From Schizochytrium sp. TIO01 (taxonomy: Eukaryota; Protista; Bigyra: Labyrinthulomycetes), in contig SMSO01000031.1 in NCBI GenBank assembly GCA_004764695.1, positions 968,436-1,032,435 on the forward strand: a stretch of DNA of 64,000 nucleotides, written 5' to 3'. The notes below the pieces were generated by a model. The model made no database searches. It saw nothing but the letters and a program-made list of their open reading frames with translations, and was not told the DNA's origin. Each line of letters opens with the position of its first letter. The stretch's first letter is position 1. A program made the position numbers and the translations under genes. Of the stretch, positions 15,983-38,629 are shown one piece after another.

Positions 15983-18859
15983 CTAAGCAAGATCCATGCT
16001 AATGTTCTTGGTGAGAGGTGCAGGTGTAGATTCAACATCCTCAATAGACACCTCTGCTGCATCATCAGCCACAATCTCGTCCTCTAAATCGTCCTCGTCA
16101 TCGAATGTGACCACCCGGCTCTGAGAGGTACCATTGCGAGTAGTGGGGTTCGCCATCGTGCGAGTGTTGCGTGTGAGCATATGGTTATCCGAAGTGAGGT
16201 TTGAAGCTTCATTTGTGCGGGTACCACCCGTCTTTCGAGCAGTCGACGTAGGTTCAGGGTTCGATGTCTGCCTAGATCCACTACCCAATTTCTGTTTCAC
16301 CACACGTGAAACACTCTGCAGCTCAGGAACAGTAACATAGTATATCTTTGGGCCGATGACAAGCATAATTAGTACCAATGATGTGAATACAAGGGTGGCA
16401 GACACTAAAAACGTCTGTGACTTGATTTCCATAGGGACACCAGCCACCAAAATCATAGTAAGGACAATTATAGACGTTGCCACATAGCTTGCAAACATAA
16501 TGCTCCGACTTTCCATGTACTTTGCATCACTATCACGACCTTGATAAGAAAGAAATGTTGTAAAGAGCAAGATCACGATTACATATGACACAGCGAAAAC
16601 AGGAAAAACCACATAGCCATTATGTATTTCCACTACACCGCTAGCCTCAGCAGCACGCAAAATGTCCCCTGCTCCAAAGTAAACGCAAATATTGGCACTA
16701 AAATCAACCGAATAACCAGGAATTTGATACAAATGCTTGTCGTTGCCAACAAAAGCCGCTTCAACGGCCTTAGGAGCATCCACGGCATACCAGATAGTAA
16801 TGATGAGCACCATGCCAAACATGATTAACGCAAGAACCTTAAACATGTACTGAGCGGTAACAGAGATCCGCTTCATTGTAGAATTATTCCAAATCCTCCA
16901 AATACGGTACACCTTGACAGTGAGTGCGCCAACGAGAAGCGTAATACTCAACGCAAGATGAATTACCCGAGTTCTGCACTTATTTGTTCTGTTGGGACCT
17001 AGAAAAGACATCGCAGCAATGTTGCACCAAATACCCGCAAAACACATAACCACAAGAAATTCTCGTTGCCCTGCTTTTATTGCAACGTTTGAGTAATGTC
17101 TCAGAACAACAAAGAGGAATACATAGCAGACAATTCCTCCAATGCTTGTCAAGCTTATAATAACTTTGCCCGTAATTGAGTTGTATGGGACATACGGACA
17201 TTCTAATCTCGAAGTCGTGGGTAACTCCAGTTGTACTACCGAGTTATCACATCCACAAGGAATATCAGGATCCATGCATGCTCTACCTTCACGATCAGAC
17301 CAATAAAAGGTAACTCTTCGCCAGTCCCCATCGCACTCGTGTGCCCATCCTTGTACAAAATCGTCTATGGTGCAAGTTGTTAAGTCTTGACCGAAATTTG
17401 TATAGTTGACGAAGCTTCCAGTTTTCTCATCAAGAGGGTATAAGTTATGTAATGTCATGTCAGTCTCCTCAGAGTGGGTATGTGTTCTATCGTTATCCTC
17501 ATATTCTACGTGTGCTTGTACTAGAGTCATTTCATATTCAGCTTGACCATTTTCATCAAAACTGAGACTTCCTCCGGGCAAAATACGATCTGTAAAAGTG
17601 GTGGCTTGCATGTAACTCCGCACAGATTTTCTGGTTGTTACACTAGCACTTTGCATTGACTCTATAAGAACTCTTGCACTTTCGTAAGCCAAAGCTGCGT
17701 ACCACTCTGCATCAAGTTGTTCGCTGGGCATACTAAACATTGCTGTTGATGAAGCAGACGCCCCCGAGCTCGCCAAAGTTGTTGCAATGGCGTCATCAAT
17801 CACCTGCAAGGAGTCTGCCCAAGCATAGGCCTCGTATAGTCTCCAACGCTGCGCCCAATCTCGCGACACCTTTGAATTTTGTGTTATACTCCACCATTGC
17901 GCTGCAATGAGACCATTTACATACTCGGGATGATCAAGAGCATTTACGTCCTCAATCTCTACTCCCCTGGCTCCAAAGCTGGCAAAGTCGAAAGTCATTG
18001 CTGTAGATGCTAATGTGTCGAGAAAAACACGAAATTCATTTGAGTGAGCATCTACAAGTAAAGCGTGGCAAGTGTTATCCTGATGGTCTGAAGTCTTATT
18101 CCACACACGCTCTAAGTCTGTCTCAAGATGCTGAAGAATGTCTGGATCTGAGTCATCCAGCGGGTATGGGAAATCAGACGCATAGTAAATTTGAAAGTAG
18201 TTTGGTTTTCGTAACGCATACGAGGCTATCTCTTGGCGAAATGCCTCCCCCTCCGAGGAGTTTTCCCATAGCAAGGCAATATTGCAAGGCTTCTGCAAGT
18301 GCCCTTCATCCATTAGGCTTTGCATTAAGTTGAGAATGGAATCAGTCATGCGCTTTACAGACGACAAAAGACCGAATGCCCAACGTCCATCGTTTTTTCC
18401 TTCACCAGGATTCGCGCTGCTTGTCTTGTATATACCTGCAGTCGCACTTCCAGCATTGATGTACGGTACCTGATGCTTATTTGCAATTTCTATTAGAGCA
18501 GCAACCTCAGCGGTGTCATAGCCTCCAAGTATAAAAACGTCTGGGTCGGAGACTAAGAGTGTTGTCAATTCTGTATCAAGTCTTGCAGCCCCAATAGATG
18601 CGCGAGACTCACTATCGAGAAGAACTAAATTGCTTGAGCTCAGGGTAATTTGTGAGCTTCCCCAGCTTACTTTGTTCCCAATCTCATCAAAGTACATGCC
18701 ATAACCATGTAGATAGTATTCCCCAATTCGTGCATTTTCTCCAGTTAGTGGTAGCACTTGTACTATGTGCAGAGCTGATGCTGTGTTAAGCAAGGCCACT
18801 GTCACAGCTGATATAGCTAGAAAAGCTGAACGCGCTGTATTGCAGGGACAAGACTTCAT
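15983..18859 (-). CDS. Class C (GABA-B/metabotropic glutamate-like) G-protein-coupled receptor
   Basis: Signal peptide, periplasmic-binding-protein-like Venus flytrap region (VLPLTGENARIG, ILGGYDT, IANKHQVPYIN, GGSLSFDENG), Cys-containing linker, then seven hydrophobic helices with 7tm_3 motifs (IKAGQREFL, LTVKVYRIWRIW, KYMESRSI, IGPKIY) and an S/T-rich tail. First ATG at 18859. Confidence 0.9.
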   Translation of the reverse strand: MKSCPCNTARSAFLAISAVTVALLNTASALHIVQVLPLTGENARIGEYYLHGYGMYFDEIGNKVSWGSSQITLSSSNLVLLDSESRASIGAARLDTELTTLLVSDPDVFILGGYDTAEVAALIEIANKHQVPYINAGSATAGIYKTSSANPGEGKNDGRWAFGLLSSVKRMTDSILNLMQSLMDEGHLQKPCNIALLWENSSEGEAFRQEIASYALRKPNYFQIYYASDFPYPLDDSDPDILQHLETDLERVWNKTSDHQDNTCHALLVDAHSNEFRVFLDTLASTAMTFDFASFGARGVEIEDVNALDHPEYVNGLIAAQWWSITQNSKVSRDWAQRWRLYEAYAWADSLQVIDDAIATTLASSGASASSTAMFSMPSEQLDAEWYAALAYESARVLIESMQSASVTTRKSVRSYMQATTFTDRILPGGSLSFDENGQAEYEMTLVQAHVEYEDNDRTHTHSEETDMTLHNLYPLDEKTGSFVNYTNFGQDLTTCTIDDFVQGWAHECDGDWRRVTFYWSDREGRACMDPDIPCGCDNSVVQLELPTTSRLECPYVPYNSITGKVIISLTSIGGIVCYVFLFVVLRHYSNVAIKAGQREFLVVMCFAGIWCNIAAMSFLGPNRTNKCRTRVIHLALSITLLVGALTVKVYRIWRIWNNSTMKRISVTAQYMFKVLALIMFGMVLIITIWYAVDAPKAVEAAFVGNDKHLYQIPGYSVDFSANICVYFGAGDILRAAEASGVVEIHNGYVVFPVFAVSYVIVILLFTTFLSYQGRDSDAKYMESRSIMFASYVATSIIVLTMILVAGVPMEIKSQTFLVSATLVFTSLVLIMLVIGPKIYYVTVPELQSVSRVVKQKLGSGSRQTSNPEPTSTARKTGGTRTNEASNLTSDNHMLTRNTRTMANPTTRNGTSQSRVVTFDDEDDLEDEIVADDAAEVSIEDVESTPAPLTKNISMDLA

Positions 18860-20501
18860 TCTTTGGGAGGCTGAAGACACTGCAATCTCCTCGTCCTCTT
18901 CAAGTCGACGTCGTTGCTTTCCTTTTACGGATTTGCTTGCCCTCCCACGCTCCAGGCTTGTGTTTGAACCAGGGTTTATGATCTTTTAGGTTCTGTACAT
19001 GTACCAGCTAGCATAGATTGGGTCAAATTCTAATGCACCCCGCACTGTGCCAGCTCTTTATGAACATCACACGTGCTATCCAGACGCAGAATGGAGGCTG
19101 AATCAAAGTACCTTTTCTACATCCCCTTACCATGGGCTCTCTCACAAGATGGCCTCATGATCCTTCAAATGAACTGGATTAAATTGCCATTTTTGCCAAA
19201 CTGAGGGTGGCCAAATGCACCTGAAAGTGTAATCTTTTCGAATTGTATTCATACTATTGACTATAATAACGCAATCAATCATAAAAACATTAGGGGGTCT
19301 GGCCAGGCTATGCGTGTGTGCTCCAAACTCCTGCAGGCGGCACAATTCTGCGTATGAAACGCCTAGCTGCTTGCAAAGGAGTTTGTCTCGTCCTTTCTCT
19401 ATCGCTACATTTTAGATTAGTTAGGAGTAGCTGGACACTACTAATACTACCTAAGAACACTGCGCCATGTCCGTCTCCAGGAGTGGGCCATCGTCAACAA
19501 TATCGCATGCCAATCGACCCTCGTGCTCTGCAGTAATAATTCTGTCACACCATCAAAATGAGGGATCCGAGTCGTGACCTACAATATTTGTCGTTAAGTT
19601 CTTTAAATCGCTTAAGAGTTCCGACAGCATTATTTCGTTGAGAGCTAAGTCACTAACGACCTCCAAATTGAACCCATACTAAAAAGGGAGTTTTAGGAGG
19701 AACTTAAGCTCACGCAAACCTATTCCCACCAGAACCTCCGCCAAACTCTTCAGCAACCTCGAAAGACTTCGACTATCTCCGTGTAGTTACTGACTTATGA
19801 GGCCTTTCAGCACTCTTCAAGAGATAACCCTCTGTGCTCAACCCCAATTCAGTACAAACTTGAGAGCGATACTAGCAAGCTCAGTACACGAACAAAGACC
19901 AAAGCCAAATTGAAGCACATGACCTTGACCTGCTGAAACTCTTCTACATGTTCATTCTTTAAATGGGAATATATCGACTCTGAAGACTTTGGTGCGGCAC
20001 AGGAATCGCATCTCGGCTTTGTAAAATATATGAAGTCCTCCATTTTGTATTCTCTAACAGGACGACCATCCTATTAGTACCTGATTAGCAACTTGCTATG
20101 CACCAATCTACAAATTTTGGAACAGAACAGTGAGTTTGGGGGGTAGAGTAGACTTAAGGGGAAAAGACTTCATGCATAAAGAAAGAAACCATGGGAAAGA
20201 ATGAAGTTAAGCATGCCTCAAAGGTCGCAGTTGAGAGTTGCGTTGTGCGAGAGTAAGCAAAGTCAAGGACAAAGGCAATCTGTGCTGGCAAGGACGCAAC
20301 GAGGAATCCAGAGCATTTGAGACACGTGTGCAGAATCTATGCAAGGACCTGGTTTGAGGTTCAAGATCCCTGGGTGAGTTCGAGTCGTTTAGTTGAAGCA
20401 ACTGGCGCAAGTCGTCGAGAGCGCAACAACGAGAGCCACAAGGCTTGCAGGACCGTCAAGAAGCAAAGATTCGGCATTATAGAGTCTCGAACTTATAGAA
20501 A

Positions 20502-23713: not shown

Positions 23714-24271
23714 TTACGCTTCCTTGTTCTCGGCGAAGTAAGCCTTAAGCCCCTCGAGGGCCTTGAAGCGGTGCGAAATCTTGTTTTTCTCTGCCTTGTC
23801 CATCTCCGCATAAGTCTCTTCATAGCCATCAGGCTGAAAGACGGGGTCCCAGCCAAAGTCAGTAGGTCCACGGGCCGGCACGATCTTGCCGCTGGTGCGA
23901 CCCACAAAGGTCTTCACCTCGGCATTGGGACCAGCGCTGTATGCGAAAATACACTGCGCATAAGCAGACTTGTCTTCGTAGGCTGCAAGCAAATTGTTGA
24001 GACCCTCATGGCCAGTCTTTTCGAGAAACCACTTGATGTAGACGCCAGGAAGACCTCCAAGCGCATTGAAGCACAAGCTGGTGTCTTCAACGATCACAGG
24101 GCCTCCAATTTTGTCCTGGGCAAGCCTGCACTTCTCCTTCACCACGTCTTCAGGCTCGCCTTGCAACTCCGGCAAGTCCAGCTTCTCATTGCGCAGCTCC
24201 AGAGCAGTGCCTACGATGGCCTGCACCTCCTCAAGTTTCTTGGCATTTCCTGTCACAAATGTCACCACCAT
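23714..24271 (-). CDS. ITPA: Inosine triphosphate pyrophosphatase (Ham1 family)
   Basis: [58 protein letters not shown]. Likely start ATG at 24271 (alternative ATG at 24301). Confidence 0.96.
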
Positions 24272-25722
24272 CTTGCTAGATCTTCGAGCAGCGGCCTGCA
24301 TCCAAACCAAGTTGCGAACCTCGAGCCTGTTGCGGGATTTGCAGCCTTTTAGAGGTGAATGGAGACTTTCTGCTCAATCTTATCGTCGTCGTCGCCTTCT
24401 CAGCCACTGCATAGGAGTTCTTCAACAACTAGGTAACCATCACCTACAAGATACTATAGGAGCTGCGTAGGTACACCATCGTCATTGGTCATCTCATTTA
24501 ATTGACGATGCTGATGGCGGCTCTTGCATCGAAGACAGCTTGAAAGCAGCTGCTGCAGAAAAGCAAGGCAAGCAAAGACGCAGCCGAGGGTGCGGAACGA
24601 TCACAGACAGCGCTGCCAGAAATTGGGTGATGGAGTAGAGCGAAGAACGATCCTAGATCGTGCGCACAAAGCCTTCACTTAAGTTGGGGAGCGGGTGATG
24701 GCTGAGGCCATGGATGCCTGAGTTGCTGCTCTGTTGCTGACCTGAGACACGCATCGGCAAAGAATCAGGCACTCTTGGTGAGATTTATCCCAGTGATGCA
24801 CTCGCCATTGGCTGGTCCTTTGTGATTAGTGGCGTGGATTTGCCTGCGAGGATGACTGGGTCAAAGGTCACAACAGCCGAGCGTCTAAAATAATCGGAGA
24901 GCCAATTCCAATTAGCACTGTGTCCGCCACATCTCAAAACCTCGATCAAAAGGACTGTACCCTATTACAAAGAATGGGCTTTCGTTGCAAATTGCATTGA
25001 GCTTTTATTCGATGACGTAGAACAGAATACCCTTTGGAGCGCAGCACTTAATAGTCTCAGTCGTTCTTCAAGCGAAATGAACTCCAAGTCGGGACGTTCG
25101 CCAGTTCGGCACCGATCCGTCCATCTGAGAACATATTCTCGAGTTTATATTGAAGTAGTTGGTTGGTCAAAGCACCCTTTGAAGGATGTCTTCCCTTGAA
25201 AAACAAAAAAAGTTGCTGCCGTTACAACAATTGAATTCGCCGCTGGAAGCATCATTTTTGATTTTAAAATGTTTTTCATTAAACTTGAAATAACAATAGT
25301 AAAAATGAGTAGCGTAATAATCATAATGATATATTTTTTCGTTTTCATTTTCGTTTTAGTGAATGCATTAATTTAAAAACAAAATGATATTAAAAAAAAT
25401 TAAAAAATCTTTATACCTGGACCTAATATAATTAATTAATAATGTATTTGTATGCCTATCTATACATGGGTATATTATGTTCATGAAACTTTCTAATTGC
25501 AGCCGTTACACCTCGCGCTATGAGATTCAAGGGCACTGCTGGGAGACGCAACTAAAATAACCTGGGTTTCATAGCTCTCACGAAACCAAAACGGCCCAAA
25601 GGATTGAACAATTCATGCCATGCTGGGTAATCTTCTCGGATAGCGTCTCTATTATCGCAGGGTATAGATAGCTACGCAACTGATAGTAAGAAATATCTCT
25701 TTGCCAGCCAACGAAGATTTCA

Positions 25723-25778
25723 ATTTATATTTATTTATATTTATTTATATTTATTTATTTATTTATTTATTTATTTAT
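25723..25778. repeat. (TTTA/TTTATA)n microsatellite
   Basis: Seen directly upstream of the LRR gene. Confidence 0.85.
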
Positions 25779-26424
25779 TTTAAATGGGCTTATCCTTTTC
25801 TTTAATAGACTGGGTAATGTAATCAGGGTTTCTAAAGATCAGGGAGCGATCTTGGGAGATGAGCAATTCCTTCAGCTTGAGTATTTACCCTAGCTAAAGT
25901 ATTTTAAGGAGCAGTCTCTGACACCCTCTCACGAGTCACAAGTCAAAATGAGGTTGAATCTCTCAGCTCCAAGGTGTGTAAAGTTCAAAACAATCACTCA
26001 CTGTGTCTGAGAGTGCTTTTTATACCTCCTGTTCATGCGGATAGAATTGAACATCATGATTGATTTATTGATTGATTTACCTACTAGGTACTGGTAATAA
26101 CCTGTATAAAGAAATCAGGTAGCTGTACGGGTAATAGGGACCTACTACCATAGTAGTAAAATGCAATCTCCAATAACTGCAAAGCTGTATCTTCAGTCGA
26201 TCCACGCGCGATCAACGAAGTGAGGCGAAGACGGACGAAGGCTAGAGCACTGCCCTACGTACGAGCACTAGCGCGTTTTACAAGACCACTTGCGAGTCGC
26301 GCGGGGTTAGTACACGCCTCAGCTCCTGTCCAGCACAGCAAGCTCGCTCAACTTGAGAGCGGCGAAGCAGAGCACCGATATAGACTGTGAAAGCGAGCTT
26401 GCTTAAAGTAAGATCCGCAACAAA

Positions 26425-29400
26425 ATGGCCAAGGCTGAAAGTGTCGAGGCCATCAACAGCGACACTACGGACGTCGAGTAAGTTTGTAGCACCATATAGA
26501 GAACCCGGATCGAGGCATGCGTGCTTCATTATTTCCAAAGCAATTTTGTTAACTGAACTATTTCTTTCATGCGACAAGCACAGACTTTCGGGGAAGAATA
26601 TTAGTGACAAAGACGTTAAGGCAATTGCAAAAGCGCTCAAAGGCTGCAAGAGTCTAAGAAAAATCAAGTAAGTTTCATTGAAAAACAGCTGAAAGAAGAA
26701 AGAAGAAAGGACAGAGTTAGCGACAAAATAACTATTTAGAAGGAGAATTATCAAATATTTGATGCAAAATTAGAAAAACTTCCATACACGAAAACGATGT
26801 TATTTCCAATCATTCAGATAGATCATGTCAAGTCATGATCAATTGAACCAATGCCATTTCGTGGCATACGAGTGATCAACATGAACAGCAATTAACTGAC
26901 TTATGTCTAAACCACATACATAGTCTTTCGAGTAATGACATCGGTGATGAAGGCGTAATGGCCATCACCAGGAGCGTAAAGTGCTGCAAGAATCTTACCA
27001 GTTTACTGTACGTTTTACTGTGTACACGTGCACAGTTCTTGTATTGATAATTTTGTTGGGAAAAGAAGAAGTCGGAATTAAGTCCGCAAGATGTTATATT
27101 TTCCTCACCCAAATCTCGAACCACGCAATTACACAACATCAAAAATATCAGAATGATCGTTTTCAATGAAATTGATGCGAACAAATAACAAGGAACGATG
27201 CATGCAAAAGAACAGTTGTTTGAACACTATTCCCAGATTTTTATAAGCTTTCAACTACTGACATATATGTTGACAACGAATTTGGGCCATGCACACAGCC
27301 TTCAGAATAACAACATTGGTGATGAAGGTGCGGTGGCTCTCGCGAAGGCACTTGCGCAGAGTCCAAACCTGACCATATTGAGGTACGTTAGATGCATGCA
27401 AAAAGGCCACCGGTTAGCTTGCTGTGTTACACAATGACTGAATCAGAGCGGGAAGCAACTAGTTTTCCACTCTATTGAGCTCCGAACTTTGTGAAGGTCC
27501 AGAATATTTAGATCCATTCATAGGGAGTATATTATAATGAAACCGAATCACGATGTGAGGTGGAGTTGTGATATGGAGAGGCTCGCACACGTTCGCAATT
27601 GAGAAGAGTTGACTGACACACGTTTTTATATATTGACAACGGATTTGGGTCATTCACACAGTCTTCAGAATAACAACATTGGTGATGAAGGTGCGATGGC
27701 TCTCGCGAAGGCACTTGCGCAGTGTCCTAAACTGACCATTTTGGAGTACGTTAGATGCATGCAAAAATGCCACCGGTTAGCTTGCTGTGTTACACAATGA
27801 TTGAATTAGAGCGGGAAGCAACTTGTTTCCTGCTCTATTGAGCTCCGAACTTTGTGAAGGTGCAGAATATTTGGATCCATTCATAGGGAGTACATTATAA
27901 TGAAACCAAATCACGATGTGAGGTGGAATTGTGATATGGAGAGGCTCGCACACGTTCGCAATTGAGAAGAGTTGACTGACACACGTTTTTATATATTGAC
28001 AACGGATTTGGGTCATTCACACAGTCTTCAGAATAACAACATTGGTGATGAAGGTGCGATGGCTCTCGCGAAGGCACTTGAGCAGTGTCCTAAACTGACC
28101 ATTTTGGGGTACGTTAGATGCATGCAAAAAGACCACCGGTTAGCTTGCTGTGTTACACAATGATTGAATCAAAGCGGGAAGCAACTTGTCTCCTGCTCTA
28201 TTGAGCTCCGAATTTTGTGAAGGTGCAGAATATTTAGATCCATTCATAGGGAGTACATTATAATGAAACCAAATCACGATGTGAGGTGGAGTTGTGATAT
28301 GGAGAGGCTCACACACGTTCGCAATTGAGAAGAGTTGACTGACACACGTTTTTATATATTGACAACGGATTTGGACCATGCACACAGTCTTGCTAATAAC
28401 AAGATTGGTGATGAAGGTGCGGTGGCTCTCGCGAAGGCACTTGCGCAGTGTCCTAAACTGACCATTTTGGAGTACGTTAGATGCATGCAAAAATGCCACC
28501 GGTTAGCTTGCTGTGTTACACAATGATTGAATTAGAGCGGGAAGCAACTTGTTTCCTGCTCTATTGAGCTCCGAACTTTGTGAAGGTGCAGAATAATTGG
28601 ATCCATTCATAGGGAGTACATTATAATGAAACCGAATCACGATGTGAGGTGGAGTTGTGATATGGAGAGGCTCACACACATTGACTGACACACATTTTTA
28701 TATATTGACAACCAATTTGGACCATGCACGCAGTCTTGGTAATAACAAGATTGGTGATGAAGGTGCGATGGCTCTCGCGAAGGCACTTGCGCAGTGTCCA
28801 AACCTGACCATATTGAGGTACGTTAGATGCATGCAAAAATGCCACCGGTTAGCTTGCTGTGTTACACAATGACTGAATCAGAGCGGGAAGCAACTTGTTT
28901 CCTGTTCTATTGAGCTCCGAACTTTGTGAAGGTGCAGAATATTTGGATCTATTCATAGGGAGTACATTATAATGAAACCGAACCACGATGTGAGGTGGAG
29001 TTGTGATATGGAGAGGCTCACCCACGTTCGCAATTGAGAAGAGTTGACTGACACACGTTTTAATATATTCGTTGGGCCATGCACACAGTCTTGCTAATAA
29101 CAAGATTGGTGATGAAGGTGCGGTGGCTCTCGCGAAGGCACTTGAGCAGTGTACAAACCTGACCAATTTGTAGTACGTTTGATACAAGCGATAAGGCAAC
29201 CGGTTAGGTTGCTGTGTTATACAGTGATTGAATCACAGCGGGAACAACTAGTTTCCTGCTCTATTGAGCTCCGAATTTTGTGAAGGTGCAGAATATTTAG
29301 ATCCATTCATAGGGAGTACATTATAATGAAACCGAATCACGATGTGAGGTGGAGTTGTGATATGGAGAGGCTCACACACATTGACTGACACACATTTTTA

Positions 29401-32400
29401 TATATTGACAACCAATTTGGACCATGCACGCAGTCTTGGTAATAACAAGATTGGTGATGAAGGTGCGATGGCTCTCGCGAAGGCACTTGCGCAGTGTCCA
29501 AACCTGACCATATTGAGGTACGTTAGATGCATGCAAAAATGCCACCGGTTAGCTTGCTGTGTTACACAATGACTGAATCAGAGCGGGAAGCAACTTGTTT
29601 CCTGTTCTATTGAGCTCCGAACTTTGTGAAGGTGCAGAATATTTGGATCCATTCATAGGGAGTACATTATAATGAAACCGAACCACGATGTGAGGTGGAG
29701 TTGTGATATGGAGAGGCTCACCCACGTTCGCAATTGAGAAGAGTTGACTGACACACGTTTTAATATATTCGTTGGGCCATGCACACAGTCTTGCTAATAA
29801 CAAGATCGGTGATGAAGGTGCGGTGGCTCTCGCGAAGGCACTTGAGCAGTGTACAAACCTGACCAATTTGTAGTACGTTTGATACAAGCGATAAGGCAAC
29901 CGGTTAGGTTGCTGTGTTATACAGTGATTGAATCAAAGCGGGAACAACTAGTTTCCTGATCTATTCAGCTCCGAACTTTGTGAAGGTGCAGAATATTTGG
30001 ATCTATTCATAGGGAGTACATTATATATGAAACCGAACCACGATGTGAGGTGGAGTTGTGATATGGAGAGGCTCAGAACGTTCGCAATTGAGAAGAGTTG
30101 ACTGACACACGTTTTAATATATTTGTTGGGCCATGCACACAGTCTTGCTAATAACAAGATCGGTGATGAAGGTGCGATGGCTCTCGCGAAGGCACTTGCG
30201 CAGTGTACAAACCTGACCGATTTGTAGTACGTTTGATGCAAGCGAAAAGGCAACCGATTAACTTGCTGTGTTATAGAGCGATTGAACCAAAACGGGAAGC
30301 AACTAGTTTTCTACTGTATTGAGCTCCGAACTTTGTGAAGGTGCAGAATAATTGGATCCATTCATAGGGAGTACATTATAATGAAACCGAATCACGATGT
30401 GAGGCGGAGTAGTGATATTGAAAGGCTCACAAACGTTCACAATTGAGAAGAGTTGACTGACACAAACTTTTATATTTTGACAACGGATTTGGGCCATGCA
30501 CACAGTCTTGCTAATAACAACATTGATGATGAAGGTGCGATGGCTCTCGCGAAGGCACTTGCGCAGTGTCCTAACCTGACCATTTTGGGGTACGTTAGAT
30601 GCATGCAAAAATGCCACCGGTTAGCTTGCTGTGTTACACAATGATTGAATCAAAGCGGGAAGCAACTTGTTTCCTGCTCTATTGAGCTCCGAATTTTGTG
30701 AAGGTGCAGAATATTTGGATCCATTCATAGGGAGTACATTATAATGAAACCAAATCACGATGTGAGGTGGAGTTGTGATATGGAGAAGCTCACACACGTT
30801 CGCAATTGAGAAGAGTTGACTGACACACGTTTTTATATATTGACAACGGATTTGGACCATGCACACAGTCTTCAGGATAACCACATTGGTGATGAAGGTG
30901 CGATGGTTCTCGCGAAGGCACTTGCGCAGTGTCCAAACTTGACCATATTGAGGTACGTTAGATGCATGCAAAAATGCCACAGGTTAGCTTGCTGTGTTAC
31001 ACAATGATTGAATCAGAGCGGGAAGCAACTAGTTTTCTACTCTTTTGAGATCCGAACTTTGTGAAGGTGCAGAATATTTGGATCTATTCATAGGGAGTAC
31101 ATTATATATGAAACCGAACCACGATGTGAGGTGGAGTTGTGATATGGAGAGGCTCAGCACGTTCGCAATTGAGAAGAGTTGACTGACACACGTTTTAATA
31201 TATTTGTTGGGCCATGCACACAGTCTTGCTAATAACAAGATTGGTGATGAAGGTGCGGTGGCTCTCGCGAAGGCAATTGAGCAGTGTACAAACCTGACCG
31301 ATTTGTAGTACGTTTGATGCAAGCGAAAAGGCAACCGATGAACTTGCTGTGTTATAGAGCGATTGAACTAAAACGGGAAGCAACTAGTTTTCTACTGTAT
31401 TGAGCTCCGAACTTTGTGAAGGTGCAGAATATTTGGATCCATTCATAGGGAGTACATTATAATGAAACCGAACCACGATGTGAGGTGGAGTTGTGATGTG
31501 GAGAGGCTCAGCACGTTCACAATTGAGAAGAGTTGACTGACACACGTTTTTATATATACGTTGGGCCGCACACAGTCTTCAGAATAACAACACTGGTGAT
31601 GAAGGTGCGATGGATCTCGCGAAGGCACTTGCGCAGTGTCCTAACCTGACCATTTTGGGGTACGTTAGATGCATGCAAAAATGCCACCGGTTAGCTTGCT
31701 GTGTTACACAATGATTGAATCAAAGCGGGAAGCAACTGGTTTCCTGATCTATTGAGCTCCGGACTTTGTGAAGGTGCAGAATATTTGGATCCATTCATAG
31801 GGAGTACATTATAATGAAACCGAACCACGATGTGAGGTGGAGTTGTGATGTGGAGAGGCTCAGCACGTTCGCAATTGAGAAGAGTTGACTGACACACGTT
31901 TTAATATATTTGTTGGGCCATGCACACAGTCTTGCTAATAACAAGATCGGTGATGAAGGTGCGGTGGCTCTCGCGAAGGCACTTGAGCAGTGTACAAACC
32001 TGACCGATTTGTAGTACGTTTGATGCAGGCGAAAAAGCAACCGATTAACTTGCTGTGTTATAGAGCGATTGAACCAAAACGAGAAGCAACTATACTGTAT
32101 TGAGCTCCGAACTTTGTGAAGGTGCAGAATATTTGGATCCATTCATAGGGAGTACATTATAATGAAACCGAACCACAATGTGAGGTGGAGTTGTGATGTG
32201 GAGAGGCTCAGAACGTTCGCAATTGAGAAGAGTTGACTGACACAAACTTTTATATTTTGACAACGGATTTGGGCCATGCACACAGTCTTGCTAATAACAA
32301 CATTGGTGATGAAGGTGCGATGGCTCTCGCGAAGGCAATTGAGCAGTGTACAAACCTGACCGATTTGTAGTACGTTTGATGCAAGCGAAAAGGCAACCGA

Positions 32401-35400
32401 TTAACTTGCTGTGTTATAGAGCGATTGAACTTAAACGGGAAGCAACTAGTTTTCTACTGTATTGAGCTCCGAACTTTGTGAAGGTGCAGAATATTTGGAT
32501 CTATTCATAGGGAGTACATTATAATGAAACCGAACCACGATGTGAGGTGGAGTTGTGATGTGGAGAGGCTCAGCACGTTCGCAATTGAGAAGAGTTGACT
32601 GACACACGTTTTAATATATTCGTTGGGCCATGCACACAGTCTTGCTAATAACAAGATCGGTGATGAAGGTGCGGTGGCTCTCGCGAAGGCACTTGAGCAG
32701 TGTACAAACCTGACCGATTTGTAGTACGTTTGATGCAGGCGAAAAAGCAACCGATTAACTTGCTGTGTTATAGAGCGATTGAACCAAAACGAGAAGCAAC
32801 TATACTGTATTGAGCTCCGAACTTTGTGAAGGTACAGAATATTTGGATCCATTCATAGGGAGTACATTATAATGAAACCGAATCACGATGCGAGGCGGAG
32901 TTGTGATATGGAGAGGCTCACACACGTTCGCAATTGAGAAGAGTTGACTGACACACGTTTTTATATTTTGACAACGGATTTGGGCCATGCACACAGTCTT
33001 GCTAATAACAACATTGGTGATGAAGGTGCGATGGCTCTCGCGAAGGCACTTGCGCAGTGTCCAAACCTGACCATATTGAGGTACGTTAGATGCATGCAAA
33101 AATGCCACCGGTTAGCTTGCTGTGTTACACAATGATTGAATTAGAGCGGGAAGCAACTTGTTTCCTGCTCTATTGAGCTCCGAACTTTGTGAAGGTGCAG
33201 AATATTTTGACCCATTCGTAGGGAGTATATTATAATGAAACCGAACCACGATGTGAGGTGGAGTTGTGATATGGAGAGGCTCACAACGTTCGCAATTGAG
33301 AAGAGTTGACTGACACACGTTTTTATATATTGACAACGGATTTGGGCCATGCATACAGTCTTCAGAATAACCACATTGGTGATGAAGGCACTTTGTTACT
33401 TACGAAGGCGCTTCAGAGCTGCAAATGGCTTGCAAAATTGGAGTAAGTATTTTTGGTATAGTTGTGAGAATAATATTTGATTTCGTAGAACCAAAAGAAG
33501 AGAGGGCAAGGATAAAGACAAGTTCCTGTATCGAATGAACTTTGAATTGATCTCCCGAATGACCAGGTGCTCAAATGCCAAAAGGTGCTCATAGAGATTA
33601 AATCATGCGAATCAATTTGTATGGATTAGCGAAGAGAGATTATGCGATTGACGTAGATAGCAGGCGACTGACGTATATCTGGAGCATGAACGATCATTAA
33701 CTGACGAACTTGTGAACAATGAACGAGCGGTATGTGTACAGCCTTATGGGTAACAAGATTTGTGCTGAAGTCGCCATGAGTCTTGCGGAGAAGTTGCACA
33801 TATCATGCCCTTCCGTGCGAATCTCGTAAGTTCTATTTATTGTATTATCTCTATCGCTCTGTGCCTCGTCTCGCTATTGTCATGTTTGCCCTGTGAAACT
33901 CAGAGTCTCGAAGATTATTTAATAGACTATCAAACAATGGTTTCTAACAGATGATCTGATTATTGTATTGGTGTATTGTAGGTGTGACTTTGGTGAAAAT
34001 TTAATCCCCAAGGAGTTGATGGCGAAGGTGGACAGTCTTGAAGATAAACTGTATATTTCAGACAGTTCTTCCTGTGTCTCAAAACTGGAGAGGTCAGCTG
34101 CAACTTCTTTGGAGCCCAGGAACAAGAAAAGTGTAGTCAACGCTGTGCTAAAGCCTTGTGATCTAGGTGAAGGTGCTGTGTAAGTTCATTGTGTAGTTGG
34201 ATGAGGTTTAGGCGATTCAATCAACCATGTCTTATTTAATTGTTCTGAACATGGGTTCCTAACTTTCTCGTTTGCTGTTGCTGCCATCGGTCACTCCTGC
34301 AGAAAAAGACTGCTTGATACAACCAGCGTAACTTTTGCTAATGTTGCACAGCTTGCCAAGGAAGCCTCAGAGTTGCGGATGAAACTTTATAAGCCTGAAG
34401 AAGTCTTTCTGCGTGCTGAAATTGAGCTGCTTGAGGAGTTCTCAGCACATGGAATCCAAAAGTACGTTGGACAGGTGAAGCTACGGAGCACTTTCGGTGA
34501 CATTATAAGTCTCAAAGCACGTTTAGAGGACCTCCAAAGGAAAATTCGCGAAAGCCCTCCGAACAGTTACTATGATCCAACCAATGGTCGAATTACAGAG
34601 TTAGGGCCAATGAAATTGCGAAAAACTTCTGGGGATGTAAAGAGTGCAAAGGATTCTTTAGAGGCTATTCAAAGCAAGAATCACAACAGCTCTCAAAAGG
34701 GTTTACACTGTCTTGTTGAGGAGCGAGACAAAGTTAGGAATTCCTTGCGATCGCTCGTCCAACACCTGTACCCTTGGGTGCGTGAAGGCCTATATGAAAT
34801 TGATGAGGCTGTTGCCCACACATTTAAAGTGAAACTTGGTAACAGGTTAACTCATTTGGGCATAAATGATTCACCAGTCGTTCAGCACGAATGCACTGAT
34901 GATTTCCAGCAGTTTCAATTGCTTGCTACTCAGGCTGGCAAGTGTGTTGAAAGCTATAAATTGAGGCTGGATCAAGAGGTTCGACTTTCCGAACAGCGAA
35001 GCAAGCAAGCAGTTGAAAGAGTCAAGGAGCGGATAACTCAGTTGGGGCTTGGTGATGCATTTTCCGTTGCCTATTTTCAGCCTGAAAAGGCAGAAGAATT
35101 GAAACCTGAGTTGTTGGAACTTCAGAATGCTCTCAAAGAAGAAATACAGGTTTTAAGAGTAGATACATCGAATGAAGAAGTGCCAAAGATTCTGCAGGCT
35201 ATCAGCTCAGCTCTTCATCGTATAGAAAGCACGGTCGGAAACGCAACGTTTGATGAAACAACCTGTACAATTTCACCGAAAGAAATCGATGAGATACATG
35301 AGTACGTGCGTTTGGGCTCAAATCGACCGAATGTCTCAAGCATCAAGCAGATATACGAGAATCTTGAGAAATCGCGAAATGCAAAGGATGGTTTACGCAG

Positions 35401-37126
35401 AGCCAAAGAGAGTCTCAACGCGTCGTTTACAGAAAAGAAAAAAGCTTTCTACAAAGGTGAAATTGAAGATCACGAACGTATTCTTGCCGAAGGTGATCCT
35501 GTCGAGCTAAGTAAAGTTCTTCGTCATAAGCTTGCTGAATTTCTGCAACATGCCCAAGAACATTATCCAGAGTTACTTAAGGATAAAGTTTGTTTAGAAA
35601 ATCTTCGTTTAACTTCTGAAGGTCTTCTGGATGTGGCGCGCTCAGATCTCTTGTTGGCAAATATCAGCATTCAGGACTTTCAGCCTGTTGGAGAGCCACT
35701 TGCTTCCAGGGGAGGCAAGACAGTACAAATGGTGCTGGACAACGCTGCAAAAATTCTGGTCTTAAAGCAATTTCAGCTCGCTGATTCAAGTCAGTCCAAA
35801 ACGTTTTACAGACAAGTCGCTAATTTGGGAAACGTGGTGTCTCAACACGTGATCCATCTCATTGGTGCTTTTGTAGACTCATCGCATGGTTTATCACGTG
35901 GGTGTATTCTCATGCCTTTCTACGAGCAAGGCGACTTAGCCAAATGGATTAAGGATCACCCTCACCAAAATAAAGCCATGCGCGATCGTCTTGCCACAGG
36001 TTTACTTATTGGGGTTGCAGACTTGCATGCTCATGGTATCGTACACTGTGACATCAAGCCTGAGAACATCTTCCTTACAAGTAACGAAACACCATTGCTA
36101 GGTGATTTCGATGGTATCAAACAAGCGAATTGCACCGCAACCAACACGTCTCTTCAAGCCACACCTCGGTACATTGCCCCGGAGTTGCGGAGTGGACCTG
36201 TAAGGAAGTTCGAAACAGCAATGGATATGTTCTCTGTGGGTATAGTTTTAAAGGAGCTGTATCCTGAGCCAACTGATGCAATGCAGGCGCTTATTGATGC
36301 TCTAACATCACCAGACCCTGGTCAACGTCCAAGCGCTCGCGAAGTACTTCAGCATGAAGCCTTTGGAGTTCCTGATGTTCCTGTAGGGCAATGTCTTGTG
36401 TGCCGGGAGAGAAAGCCGCTTTCCGAAGGCACAAGCTGTGAGAGGGGGCACTTTATTTGCCGGGATTGTGTTGCAGATTCAGTAGAAGCGGCTGCAAAAC
36501 CACAAACTTATGTAACTGTGGACGCCGATGGAACGATGAAGTGTATGAATCGTGACTGTGATGGAAGAATCTCGGGCCAAGAGATTACTCGTGTTGCGCC
36601 AACTGCATTGAAGCACCTTTTGCAGATTGCACAAATGACAGCAGAAATAAAAGCAACATCCCAGAACAAAGAGAAGATTGAGAAGCTCACGTCAGAATTT
36701 CTAAAGAAAGGTGGACTGGACAGTGATGTAGAGAGGCATCTAAAACATATTCAAGAGAAAATCCTGAATACATGTTGTCCAAACTGTGGTGCCTGCTTTG
36801 ATGGATTTGATGGATGTTGTGCCTTATACTGTGAGAGGGCTGGATGCGGACATCGTTTTTGCGCTTGGTGTCTGGAGTATAGTTCAGAGGATAGTGATGC
36901 TTGTCATAGGCACGTGAGAACTTGCCCCAAAAAAGTTGGGGAAAACCCGTATTTTCCTGATACATATGAGAAAGTATGCGGGGCGTGGCAACTGCTGCGC
37001 GCGGAGCGTTTACGCAAGTACTGGAAAGAAAATATCCTCAACAGAGATCTTCCCGATGCTCTACGAAGGCAACTCAAACCTCTGCTAACACCTGATATTG
37101 TAGGCTCTAGGTTTAGATTCAGATAA
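26425..37126 (+). CDS. 24-exon LRR(21 x 28 aa)-helical region-protein kinase-RING1-Rcat-like protein, ~1612 aa
   Basis: Manual GT-AG splicing gives one continuous frame. Exon 1: 26425-26477. 84-nt exons start at 26584, 26924, 27299, 27662, 28025, 28388, 28734, 29089, 29434, 29789, 30143, 30506, 30869, 31224, 31576, 31930, 32286, 32640, 32997, 33359, 33742. Then 33982-34179 and 34303-37126. All introns are phase 2 with GTAAGT/GTACGT donors and YAG acceptors; the LRR introns mostly carry an ACTGAC branch motif. Sum 4839 nt = 1613 codons including stop. LRR consensus xLxNNxIGDEGAxALAKALxQCxNLTxL (RI/NLR-like). Kinase motifs VLK, HCDIKPEN, DFDG, YIAPE. C-terminal C3HC4 RING and CPNC..DGCCALYC..CGHRFCAWC..H..C. 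Confidence 0.88.
27255..33390 (+). repeat. Tandem array of ~17 near-identical exon+intron units (345-363 bp)
   Basis: Each unit is an 84-nt LRR exon plus a 261-279-nt intron. The introns are as similar to each other as the exons are (e.g. gagctccgaactttgtgaaggtgcagaata, gatgtgaggtggagttgtgat, gagttgactgacacac recur in essentially every unit). Confidence 0.97.
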
Positions 37127-38629
37127 TATAAAGAAAGATCTTGGAACCCATTTTTTAGAAGCTAGATATCTTAAAAAGAACAATTTTAAAGCTTGTCTCG
37201 TAAGAATTCTCTAGAAGAGTTCTTTATGGCGTGACCACAGAATGTGGGAGACGTGTTGTCTTCTTACACAGTCATTATGTGAAAAAGAAGAAGAGAAGAG
37301 GTAAACAGTAACAAGAGTATATCACCCAAAAGAATCGGGATCGATATGCATGCTTCCTGAAAATCAAACCTATTATCATTTTTGTTTAGCGAGTTCAGTG
37401 AGACCACCAATAAGATGATGTCTTGTTGAACCTTGAGAGTTATAAGTTTGCTATTTCTAATTTATTCGGGCTTAGTTAAAACTCATATGGATCAAGTCCC
37501 AGCTAGTTTAGTAATAACTCATTAAGATCTTGGGCTACTCTTGTCTACCGCATGTAACATTGCACACCATGATTAAAGTCACATTGGTTTGGCGACACTT
37601 TAGTAATGCTTTGCACAAGATACATTTTAACCCAAACGAAGTAGAATGCGCTATATGGGCAGAAAAGAGATAAATACTATGGTAGTGCTGGGGTCGCCAA
37701 CCAAAGAATTATGTGTACAAGACATTGTTTGAGTCCTTGGCACACTATAGTTGAAGTCCTGAAGCATTTGTAGGATAGAAAATAGACAGAATGAAGTGGT
37801 ACGAAAGTGCACTATTACTTATTTAAGTGAGTACACAAGCGCAAAACCTGGGTTAGTGGCTGAGGAAACAAGTCCCCCTAATCTTTTCAAGGGTGTGAAA
37901 TCCAGATCAAGTCCGGCTTATGATATCATGAATAAGTCTTAAAATCTGAGGACAACAGATTAGCTTACTCTACAAGTCGAAGTATACAATACCTTCCTAA
38001 GATTTTATGATTATTGTCTTGCCCCCACTTTCCAAGCCACCCTTTGGCTAATCAGGAATCAGGTATTATACACTTGAAGAGATGAAGCAAGCCAACCACT
38101 TTTTTGGAGTCTAGAAGACTAAATTTGTGCAGCACAGGTTGGATTGAAGAACTTAACTAAAATCTCGAAGCTGAGGAGCAGCTAAGGTTTTATTTTATTT
38201 AATAAAATAAATATTAATTAAGATATTATGAGAATATTTAAAATATTCATCAACATAAAGAAGAGAAAAAAGAAGCAGCGATGGTTAACTTCTCAAGAAA
38301 ACCAAAATAAAGGCAACCAAGCAAAGGAGGTCGCAGTCTTTCATCAGGTCTCACAACTGTAGCAGGCGGCGCGAAGTTGGTGTCAGGGCACAGTTACTTA
38401 GCGTGATATATATCTGTCGAGAGCTTATACCTTGCTGTGGCTTCGCACGTGGCTAACGAAAAAGTATACCTGTCAATCAGCTCCCCAAACGTTGAAGTTG
38501 AAGTGACAGAGAGAAGAACTCTGCTCAACTGAGCATCGTAACATTTCTACATTAGTTCTATCAATCTACATATAGGTCATTATTGTCAAAGCGGAAAGAG
38601 CACGCCACGAGTAGTGAATAGATTGCACA

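Follow-up and report, generated by a model that had tools for sequence, protein, structure and literature searches.

The window analysed here, a 64-kb stretch of DNA, carries on its + strand a gene (26425-37126) that a splice-site scan with conceptual splicing divides into 24 exons and 23 GT-AG introns. Its spliced frame of 4839 nt comprises 1612 codons without an internal stop and encodes a protein of 1612 aa. The other long ORFs of the window are uninterrupted (286-965 aa), in keeping with the intron-poor background described in an earlier reading of the letters (the sequence-only reading). The surroundings are ordinary metabolic genes. Upstream, on the minus strand, is an ITPase-like gene (23714-24310), with no other coding ORF between it and the ATG of the gene described here. 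No rRNA gene or any Rfam match was found within the 64-kb window.

All further coordinates are on the + strand. Exon 1 (26425-26477), predicted from the gene model, holds the start codon and 17 2/3 codons and encodes a polar N-terminus. It is followed by 21 successive LRR exons, each exactly 84 nt long with an identical frame offset (phase 2-2). A scan for AG, 84 nt and GT with an open frame recovered all 21 at the starts given by the sequence-only reading: 26584, 26924, 27299, 27662, 28025, 28388, 28734, 29089, 29434, 29789, 30143, 30506, 30869, 31224, 31576, 31930, 32286, 32640, 32997, 33359 and 33742. The 28-residue period, the LxxLxLxxN motif and the 21 repeats of exactly 28 residues identify ribonuclease-inhibitor (RI)-type LRRs. 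Compared one by one with Pfam LRR_6, the exons match with E values of 1.7e-5 to 4.7e-4, single exons scoring 20.5-24.9 bits around a cut-off of 23.4 and each covering profile positions 10-24 only. Seventeen of these exons (starts 27299 to 32997) are near-identical, with introns of 261-279 nt between them. Tandem Repeats Finder reports exon and intron together as a 363-bp unit repeated 17.2 times (27264-33388, 88% matches). The cap exons on either side are divergent, as had been stated. At the N-terminal side they lie at 26584-26667 and 26924-27007 (84 nt each, phase 2); the second matches LRR_6 (E 6.7e-5) and the first does not. The C-terminal caps (33359-33442 and 33742-33825) were placed by the exon scan, the gene model and an RNA-like contig. 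Exon 23 (33982-34179; 198 nt, phase 2) is a linker for which the Pfam search gave no domain match, and exon 24 (34303-37126; 940 aa) encodes a helical region, a kinase, a RING1, a helical hairpin, an Rcat and C-terminal helices. Neither a signal peptide nor a TM segment is evident by hydropathy (best Kyte-Doolittle 19-residue mean 1.33, polar N-terminus), in agreement with the sequence-only reading. The plan of a plant-type LRR receptor-like kinase, with a signal peptide, extracellular LRRs and a single TM helix, is not seen.

Public transcript data support the 3' part of this model. A 3256-nt contig from run X1 matches the locus with 0 mismatches and joins exons 20-21-22-23-24 at the predicted GT..AG sites. 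It is made up of 24 nt of exon 20 followed by blocks 33357-33442, 33742-33825, 33982-34179 and 34303-37166. The joints 33442>33742 and 33825>33982 are therefore confirmed, exon 23 is spliced on both sides, and the contig continues 40 nt beyond the stop codon, to 37166. In the same run, depth is zero across the introns and the downstream intergenic DNA. Run X3 contains the same joint as X1 and one array exon-exon junction; in X19, a DNA-like run, no splice joints were seen. RNA support thus extends from exon 20 to the stop codon, with two internal array junctions as loose ends, and short-read contigs of this kind are unable to resolve unit number or isoforms. Because the X1 contig splices exons 20-24, the LRR exons are joined to the kinase exon in mRNA, a junction that had been chosen beforehand as one of the points on which the sequence-only reading could fail. 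The locus is an intact, transcribed and correctly spliced gene for a soluble protein.

The last exon opens with an all-helical region (34303-35668), its first 455 residues, modelled by AF2 as 17 helices (pLDDT 77). A fold search of the model gave no PDB match at E<=0.01; in Pfam even the best match (E 0.011) fell short of the cut-off, and there was no Atlas match. As this region has no recognisable fold, how the sensor might be coupled to the kinase is something we can only infer. A Ser/Thr protein kinase domain follows at 35669-36373 (Pkinase, PF00069; E 3.4e-30, 105.8 bits against a gathering threshold of 31.7). Residue-level alignment to PAK4 and 9gmp shows that it retains the beta3 Lys in VLKQF (35759-35773), the Asp of HCD and the Asn of KPEN (36044-36067), and the Asp of DFD (36101-36115); APE is at 36173-36187. 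Gln stands in for the alphaC Glu, Cys for the HRD Arg (making the kinase non-RD) and Asp for the DFG Gly. With Gln at the alphaC position and DFD for DFG, the domain may have low activity or a regulatory role.

Downstream of the kinase, profile and fold searches place a module that groups with the RBR ubiquitin ligases RNF216/TRIAD3, parkin and ARIH1/HHARI, minus their middle BRcat/IBR. No Pfam family scores above threshold for the RING1 and Rcat of this module. The module profile A1, searched against PDB sequences, finds RNF216 (E 1.8e-7) and parkin (1.5e-6), with matches that span RING1 and Rcat, and the top Foldseek matches of the module model are RBR ligases without exception. RNF216 is the closest, being the top match in both profile and fold searches. 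The RING1 zinc finger (36383-36595) adopts the fold typical of RBR ligases, with eight zinc ligands in a C3HC4 pattern. Its model superposes on RNF216 RING1 with a VIA-align Z of 10.3 (rmsd 2.4 A, 89 residues), and in alignment A1 (44 sequences) C32, C67 and C72 are invariant, H36, C39 and C42 are at least 90% conserved and C16 and C19 are below 90%. The Rcat (RING2)-like zinc finger (36770-36931), recognised by profile search, fold search and a ligand spacing shared with the RBR ligases (C-x2-C-x9-C-x4-C-x4-C-x4-C-x2-C), matches PDB sequences of parkin Rcat (i-E 0.0058, GC-ALkC aligned to GGCMHMIC) and ARIH1 Rcat (E 6.8e-4); RNF216 Rcat plus helix aligns to it at VIA-align Z 5.4-5.6. A Cys conserved in at least 90% of the alignment (codon 36815-36817) occupies the catalytic position of RBR ligases and is predicted to be catalytic. 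Unlike in the known enzymes, RING1 and Rcat are connected by a helical hairpin (36599-36766; AF2 pLDDT 91.8, helices 86-121 and 125-141) in the place of BRcat/IBR. No BRcat/IBR zinc finger was found there, as alignment A1 has no Cys/His cluster between module residues C72 and C145 and AF2 models the stretch as a pair of long helices. The AF2 model and the X1 contig place C-terminal helices and the stop codon at 36965-37126. The LRR, kinase and RING/Rcat architecture originally proposed is therefore borne out by LRR_6, by Pkinase, and by the PDB profile and fold matches to RNF216, parkin and ARIH1. RBR ligases are typically autoinhibited and activated by phosphorylation, examples being parkin with PINK1 and phospho-RNF216. 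PINK1 and parkin are two separate proteins, whereas here the ligase-like module shares one chain with a kinase and a repeat sensor.

A genome-wide search found at least 49 paralogs with the same plan, an 84-nt phase-2 LRR array and, after it, a single large helical-kinase-RING1-Rcat exon, and all 20 of the paralog upstream regions examined hold such arrays. The gene is accordingly not a conserved single-copy housekeeping gene. Over a full-length collinear alignment its last exon is 55-61% identical to those of ten paralogs, and it is a deep-branching member of this family of at least 49 genes. An ortholog, P0001, is 92-93% identical with an intact frame; the nearest named relatives are thraustochytrid proteins. 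Elsewhere the kinase and RBR-like cassette is fused to sensors of the LRR, ankyrin, WD40 or beta-propeller type. Most paralog arrays are found close to rRNA genes or contig ends, in contrast to the ordinary neighbours of this gene, and the 20 examined are hypervariable at the beta-strand face only. Entropy across the family is highest at LRR positions 2 (3.45 bits), 3 (3.12), 28 (3.00) and 26 (2.79), and scaffold positions do not exceed 0.94 bits except for positions 5, 8 and 25 (1.56-1.86 bits). Within paralog arrays the introns are 96-99% identical and the exons 84-88%, with omega of 1.1-2.8 at hypervariable codons versus 0.16-0.40 elsewhere. Synonymous sites of the scaffold codons have diverged 4-5x more than the adjoining introns. 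Simple neutral evolution does not account for this excess; it is compatible with a programmed diversification of the arrays.

The array of the gene described here differs from this pattern. In place of the family-wide homogenised cassette of ~420 bp with its hypervariable face, it has a 363-bp cassette that a genome search found at this locus only, with introns in which no similarity to family introns was found. As the cassette is private, no swapping of units with other genes is seen. Among the 17 units, identity is 0.898 for exons and 0.916 for introns (divergence 0.102 vs 0.083), and omega is 1.21 for the whole exon and 0.90 outside the beta-strand face. The five complete hypervariable-face codons have a dN of 0.317, ~3.8x the intron diversity. 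Within the unit, conservation peaks in the exon core (0.035-0.041), and the variability of the exon ends is matched by some stretches of intron. Sites with at least three different residues cluster on the face, the junction codon (position 28) among them. Face entropy is nevertheless 0.3-1.9 bits, compared with 2.8-3.5 bits in the family, and position 3 is nearly invariant (0.32 vs 3.12 bits). Four gametes are present at 42 of 91 site pairs; the units, mosaics built from a small number of haplotype blocks, fall into two subtypes and their recombinants. The array appears to have grown in place by tandem duplication, with one recent event probably duplicating two units jointly, and the mosaic is presumably maintained by unequal crossing-over or gene conversion among units. 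The low entropy at position 3, the off-face omega and the similar exon and intron divergence also match the expectation for a young, nearly neutrally evolving repeat. The gene is thus a family outlier, divergent, with ordinary neighbours, a private cassette and a far less diverse binding face. The proposal of a diversifying variable sensor is well supported for the family, whose face reaches 2.8-3.5 bits over a scaffold mostly at or below 0.94 and whose exons (84-88%) vary more than their introns (96-99%). For this gene it is weakly supported, given the haplotype-block mosaics, the near-invariant position 3, an omega of ~1.2 and the private cassette.

Taken as a whole, the data are best explained by a cytosolic LRR sensor with a kinase-to-RBR-like-ligase relay, belonging to a family that forms a recognition repertoire; we put the probability of this explanation at roughly 0.6. 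In such a protein, the LRR solenoid would bind a cytosolic ligand with its concave beta-strand face, and binding would relieve autoinhibition or drive oligomerisation via the helical region. The kinase would then phosphorylate in cis or in trans and so switch on the adjacent RBR-like ligase, which would load ubiquitin on the Rcat cysteine and transfer it to substrates. The ligand and the kinase and E3 activities of this protein are presumed from its architecture. The family as a whole seems to behave like a germline-encoded recognition repertoire used in defence or in self/non-self discrimination. For this member, the low-diversity periodic face and the ordinary-gene neighbourhood make recognition of a conserved or repetitive ligand more likely than a role as a fast-diversifying variant.

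The array could instead be a young and essentially neutral tandem amplification in a divergent family member, in which neither the number of LRRs nor the slight differences among units would be adaptive. The protein would then be no variable sensor but a conventional signalling kinase/ligase, its LRRs providing autoinhibition or contact with one fixed partner in the manner of the LRRK2 LRR. We regard this as a serious though rather unlikely account. It would fit the whole-exon and off-face omega values, the nearly equal exon and intron diversity, the intron stretches as variable as exon ends, and the two unit subtypes with recombinants of a cassette private to its locus. The metabolic neighbourhood, free of rRNA genes unlike that of most paralogs, and the conserved ortholog would also be expected. 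It does not account for the elevated dN at face codons alongside an exon core more conserved than the rest of the unit, for the concentration on the face, position 28 included, of positions with three or more residues, or for the very strong face-restricted hypervariability across the family. It is quite unlikely, in our view, that the family and this gene with it act in self/non-self or mating-type recognition among conspecific cells rather than in pathogen defence. Face-restricted hypervariability, a large family and positions near chromosome ends would suit that role, and similar features are described for fungal allorecognition NLR-like genes (PMC13449251). A protein with no signal peptide or TM, however, could not see another cell directly unless cytoplasm was shared.

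A structural origin of the repeat must also be weighed. The LORE-TEARS of Aurantiochytrium limacinum are chromosome-end spacers of 366-529 bp in 1.8-22.6 copies without database similarity, described in a preprint on a ~62-Mb thraustochytrid genome of ~45% GC in which LRR, leucine and kinase occur 0 times (10.1101/2023.06.15.545109). The array here (363 bp x17.2) falls next to or within these ranges, and the main arrays of its family likewise adjoin dispersed rRNA genes or contig ends. That it is a non-coding repeat of this type, with an incidental or mis-annotated reading frame, is nonetheless barely credible. Its unit comprises an exon and an intron from a gene that is expressed, and the array lies away from rDNA, with no rRNA gene or Rfam match in its window. 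Twenty-one exact 84-nt exons with canonical splice sites form one continuous 1612-codon frame, LRR_6 matches them exon by exon (first cap excepted), and the spliced contigs use exactly the predicted junctions. Tandem repeats of a kind held to be non-coding spacers in a probably related species (10.1101/2023.06.15.545109) may be re-read as coding. The private cassette, set against the rDNA-linked hypervariable core family, offers a natural contrast for studying the birth and diversification of arrays. A bolder version of the sensor explanation, that the cassette arrays including the private one are substrates of programmed diversification by templated gene conversion, targeted beta-strand codon change or regulated exon choice, strikes us as improbable, a shade more so than the conspecific-recognition role. 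If true, a unicellular stramenopile would have an anticipatory, lamprey-VLR-like repertoire of cytosolic receptors that signal via a built-in kinase-to-RBR relay, a PINK1/parkin-type switch in one chain.

To our knowledge, hardly any candidate receptors for immunity or recognition have been described from heterotrophic stramenopile protists. The NOD/NLRC-group NLRs have RI-type 28-residue LRRs, one per 84-nt exon. Animal and plant NLRs are similar to the predicted protein in their cytosolic location and their logic of repeat sensor plus effector. Their central module is a STAND NTPase, while here it is an uncharacterised helical region. Pfam searches that admitted matches up to E 10 found no NACHT or NB-ARC P-loop NTPase in exon 23 or in the last exon (940 aa); there was no Ras/ROC or COR match either, the LRR-kinase interval being all-helical without a PDB match, so the absence of NACHT, NB-ARC and ROC domains noted from the sequence alone stands. 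Beside the NTPase-based NLR and the GTPase-based ROCO designs, the family would add a third effector design, kinase and RBR-type ligase in one chain. It suggests that an RBR ligase can have its phospho-activation, familiar from PINK1/parkin, hard-wired in cis.

The LRR-ROCO and LRR-kinase candidate immune receptors of brown algae (Ectocarpus and others; PMC3341825, PMC11378527) are also stramenopile and cytosolic, with one LRR per exon, phase-2 introns, variable-length tandem exon arrays, diversifying selection at the beta-strand face and an attached signalling enzyme. Their exons are 72 nt (24-residue LRRs), compared with 84 nt (28-residue RI-type LRRs) here, and their effector part consists of a ROC-COR GTPase or of a kinase by itself rather than a kinase followed by an RBR-like ligase without ROC/COR. 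At the present locus, moreover, the cassette including its intron appears to have been amplified in place and not shuffled among loci. Tetrahymena has thousands of young genes near chromosome ends with LRR arrays of 90-bp exons, some fused to a protein kinase (PMC6564038). Those arrays likewise consist of tandem exons all of exactly equal length, with an extreme bias to phase 2 and a split 'junction' codon; they differ in exon length (90 vs 84 nt), in their ciliate lineage and in scale, and a ubiquitin-ligase module is not reported there. Two Hondaea fermentalgiana proteins, GBG34335.1 and GBG34857.1, have the same kinase and RBR-like cassette and are 38-39% identical over the C-terminal module (E 1e-50 to 1e-57). 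In these the cassette is preceded by LRR_6 plus ankyrin or by ankyrin repeats, so that the sensors, unlike the one described here, are short or ankyrin-type, and both proteins are annotated as protein kinases only.

The gene at 26425-37126 (+) is modeled as 24 exons separated by 23 GT-AG introns, with a coding sequence of 1612 codons (4839 nt) and no internal stops. Exon 1 lies at 26425-26477 (+), exon 23 at 33982-34179 (+; 198 nt), and the last exon, exon 24, which encodes 940 amino acids, at 34303-37126 (+). A scan for an AG, 84 nt of open frame and a GT recovered the same 21 LRR exons as the sequence-only reading, all with one frame offset, and each translates into an L-x-x-N-x-I-G-D-E-G-...-L-x-x-L repeat. 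Every internal exon is phase 2 at both borders. Seventeen inner LRR exons are near-identical and the four outer ones divergent; the only large array that Tandem Repeats Finder reported here consists of 17.2 copies of a 363-bp unit at 27264-33388 (88% matches). The exon array was thus borne out in full, divergent caps included. The joined model was used for frame and hydropathy alone, and the domain and fold searches were run exon by exon. In the joined protein a hydrophobic N-terminus is absent, with the top 19-residue hydropathy window reaching only 1.33.

To look for transcripts, we compared public sequence runs, as contigs, with positions 33100-37300. A 3256-nt contig from run X1 aligns without mismatch to 33357-33442, 33742-33825, 33982-34179 and 34303-37166, corresponding to exons 21, 22, 23 and 24 and a further 40 nt of 3' UTR, with its borders at the predicted GT..AG sites. 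The 24 nt ahead of exon 21 in this contig are identical to the 3' end of exon 20. X1 behaves as RNA, since its depth is zero in intron 21, in the intron preceding exon 21 and downstream of the gene. Because the contig joins LRR exons to the kinase exon (exons 20-24), the spliced transcripts on which the sequence-only reading depended do exist. In run X3, from a strain about 2.5% diverged, the joint 33442>33742 is also present, and a loose end reads as the end of one array exon fused to the start of another. No joints were found over this region in X19, a 64-Mb DNA-like run. The array is collapsed in all the runs, which consist of short-read contigs, and the RNA joints cover exon 20 to the stop codon plus the X3 array junction. 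Related strains or species carry the gene with nucleotide differences of about 2.5% (X3) and about 4.2% (X7) and with short indels that keep the frame (3 nt at 34810), and in X7 both spliced and intron-containing pieces are present.

Individual array exons match the Pfam LRR_6 profile, the ribonuclease-inhibitor/NLR-type repeat, with E-values from 1.7e-5 to 4.7e-4. As the beta-strand is split by the splice site, a single exon covers just the second half of the profile. The last exon contains a protein kinase domain (Pfam Pkinase, E 3.4e-30). Aligned with PAK4, it retains the Lys of beta3, the Asn and the catalytic Asp, the last within a non-RD HCD motif, while DFG is replaced by DFD and the alphaC Glu by Gln. 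From these residues the kinase is plausibly active though atypical. The 455 residues ahead of the kinase are predicted to form about 17 helices (pLDDT 77) and had no significant match in Pfam, the ESM Atlas or the PDB (Foldseek). A long-helix toxin or coiled coil was considered for this region and rejected, the matches being generic (E ≥ 0.017, TM ≤ 0.2).

For the last 260 residues Pfam gave matches below threshold (Sina_RING, E 0.038; zf-RING_2, E 0.4). An exhaustive search found this Cys-rich module in 1767 cluster representatives at E ≤ 1e-3, and aligning 44 sequences brought out two zinc-finger blocks in which ligands are invariant. When the profile of this alignment was searched against the sequences of solved structures, nearly all the significant matches were RBR ligases, including RNF216 (1.8e-7) and parkin (1.5e-6); the Rcat of ARIH1 matched at 6.8e-4. 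The parkin match covers separate stretches on RING1 and Rcat, with G-C-x-A-L-x-C opposite G-G-C-M-H-M-I-C in Rcat. The AlphaFold model of the module (pLDDT 91.8) gave a Foldseek list of RBR ligases throughout, with RNF216 best at 5.5e-5 and the phosphorylated RNF216 structure 7m4o among the matches. VIA-align superposed it on RNF216 RING1 with Z 10.3 (rmsd 2.4 Å over 89 residues) and on the RNF216 Rcat plus helix with Z 5.4-5.6. The RING/Rcat identity proposed from sequence alone therefore held, as did the overall architecture of LRR array, kinase and RING/Rcat. In the model, RING1 and Rcat are connected by a helical hairpin that lacks any Cys/His cluster; BRcat/IBR is therefore absent. Judged by sequence and model, the module is a predicted RBR-like ligase missing one defining RBR feature, BRcat.

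This RING1-hairpin-Rcat module without BRcat is widespread and covered by no Pfam family (for example in proteins P0038, P0046, P0048, P0074 and P0078). Nine of 34 long representatives have an SF1 helicase (AAA_11/AAA_12) ahead of it; in others it follows a DEAD-box helicase, ankyrin, WD40 or ubiquitin domains. The kinase-RBR-like cassette is preceded outside the source genome by LRR, ankyrin, WD40 or beta-propeller repeats, and there the RBR-like module by itself is also found behind SF1 helicases. The closest named relatives are proteins of the thraustochytrid Hondaea fermentalgiana annotated only as kinases.

We also surveyed the source genome for paralogs. A search of its 64 Mb (37 contigs) gave 378 first-look candidates for the helical-kinase-RBR-like exon and at least 49 full-length copies of it. 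We read the arrays in the 10 kb upstream of 20 paralogs. All 20 have 84-nt phase-2 LRR exons there, numbering between three and over 22 in 10 kb and mostly with a period of 419-430 bp. Computed over 145 paralog 84-nt exons, entropy per LRR position is highest at those x positions of LxxLxLxxN that are exposed to solvent: 3.45 bits at position 2, 3.12 at position 3, 3.00 at position 28 (the split junction codon), 2.79 at position 26, 1.86 at position 8, 1.67 at position 25 and 1.56 at position 5, with 0.94 bits or less at all the rest. Intron identity inside paralog arrays is 96-99%, compared with only 84-88% for the exons, and introns are about 93% identical even across contigs. Omega is 1.1-2.8 at codons of the face (the LRR beta-strand positions) versus 0.16-0.40 elsewhere. 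In the core family (arrays L016, L020, L021, L024, L026, L027, L030 and L032) scaffold-codon dS is 0.11-0.16, four to five times the adjoining-intron divergence of 1-4%. Such an excess is not expected under simple neutral evolution and suggests either that introns are homogenized while exon conversion is selected against, or that change is directed at the exons. L020 (C30:1.67 Mb) and L021 (C34:2.83 Mb), on different contigs, are nearly identical over their last four or five LRR exons and their kinase exons (L009/L010), as if a duplication between chromosomes had taken place very recently.

The window gene is an outlier in this family. Its last exon is 55-61% identical to those of the paralogs, versus 85-96% within the core clade, and an ortholog elsewhere (P0001) is 92-93% identical with an intact frame. 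All 17 copies of the 363-bp cassette are at the window locus, with one weak exon-only match elsewhere, and by blastn the window introns have nothing in common with the family introns. Its array units comprise two subtypes and their recombinants, with all four gametes at 42 of 91 informative site pairs inside the 84-nt exon; a pair of units appears to have been duplicated recently (units 7-8 and 9-10). Diversity per unit is highest at the exon ends (0.141 and 0.191) and lowest in the exon core (0.035-0.041), while the mean for introns is 0.083, some stretches reaching 0.15. An Rfam search of the gene and of the whole 64-kb window detected no RNA family, rRNA genes included, so the conserved intron stretches are without a known RNA explanation. 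Face entropy is far below that of the family, at 1.33, 0.32, 1.33 and 1.85 bits for positions 2, 3, 26 and 28. By the Nei-Gojobori method omega is 1.21 for the whole exon, 1.56 for the face codons and 0.90 for the remainder, suggesting a face-directed excess of change that is at most modest.

The private cassette, unit structure, diversity and omega figures argue that the array is young relative to the gene, and its units have the pattern of an array that grew in place and was reshuffled by recombination between units. Similar to the window gene, a deep-branching paralog (array L019, upstream of L008, G000:C5:932126-942125) has its own private low-diversity cassette with scaffold NIGTEGAISVAKALEKCVNLQ and introns 99.4% identical, so in-place amplification of private cassettes arose independently more than once. 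The sequence-only reading proposed a diversifying sensor. For the family this agrees with the hypervariable face and the omega values; for the window gene the low face entropy and private cassette make it tentative. The main rival is that the window array is a near-neutral amplification whose LRRs serve a fixed or intramolecular partner; low face entropy is consistent with it, and the conservation of the exon core leans the other way.

If the proteins are sensors, we infer a mechanism that goes beyond the anatomy, expression and family context observed here. A cytosolic ligand would dock on the concave side of the LRRs, and the helical region would transmit the signal or oligomerize. The kinase would then phosphorylate, and thereby switch on, the adjacent RBR-like ligase, which would transfer ubiquitin through its Rcat cysteine. 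The activation step is proposed because RBR ligases are autoinhibited and phospho-activated, as with PINK1 and parkin. Non-RD kinases are reportedly a class linked to pattern-recognition receptors, a link credited to Dardick and Ronald in 2006.

Arrays of one LRR per phase-2 exon are known from brown-algal ROCO and LRR-kinase genes with 72-nt exons (PMC3341825, PMC11378527), from Tetrahymena with 90-bp exons, some kinase-fused (PMC6564038), and, as cited in PMC11378527, from vertebrate gonadotropin receptors. In the literature searched we found no description of an expanded family in which RI-type LRR cassettes are combined with a kinase and an RBR-type ligase lacking BRcat, and no source for 84-nt LRR exons in NLRs. 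Aurantiochytrium limacinum (~62 Mb, 45% GC) has 366-529-bp tandem units at rDNA-bearing chromosome ends, called LORE-TEARS spacers in a preprint that does not mention genes (10.1101/2023.06.15.545109). The family arrays share their unit size, copy range and rDNA linkage, and the paralog clusters fit the subtelomeric rDNA and LORE-TEARS layout of that species. Of 48 paralogs, 21 are within 100 kb of a contig end, and further ones flank dispersed SSU rRNA genes (for example at C34 2.88 Mb, C33 1.96-1.99 Mb, C13 7.27 Mb). Clusters around SSU rRNA genes span C34 2.83-3.00, C33 1.95-2.01, C13 7.18-7.35 and C24 3.99-4.03 Mb, and many contig ends also carry clusters.

The window gene is an exception to this placement, as its array, unlike LORE-TEARS, is not rDNA-linked. 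It is found among ordinary genes for a fatty-acid hydroxylase, a squalene-cyclase-like protein, a class-C GPCR, an enoyl-CoA hydratase and an ABC transporter. An ITPase/HAM1-like gene lies upstream at 23714-24310 (-), and a (TATT)n microsatellite at 25723-25782 in the intergenic DNA ahead of the LRR gene. At 15983-18880 (-) an uninterrupted ORF of 965 amino acids combines periplasmic-binding-protein-like and class-C (7tm_3) GPCR domains.
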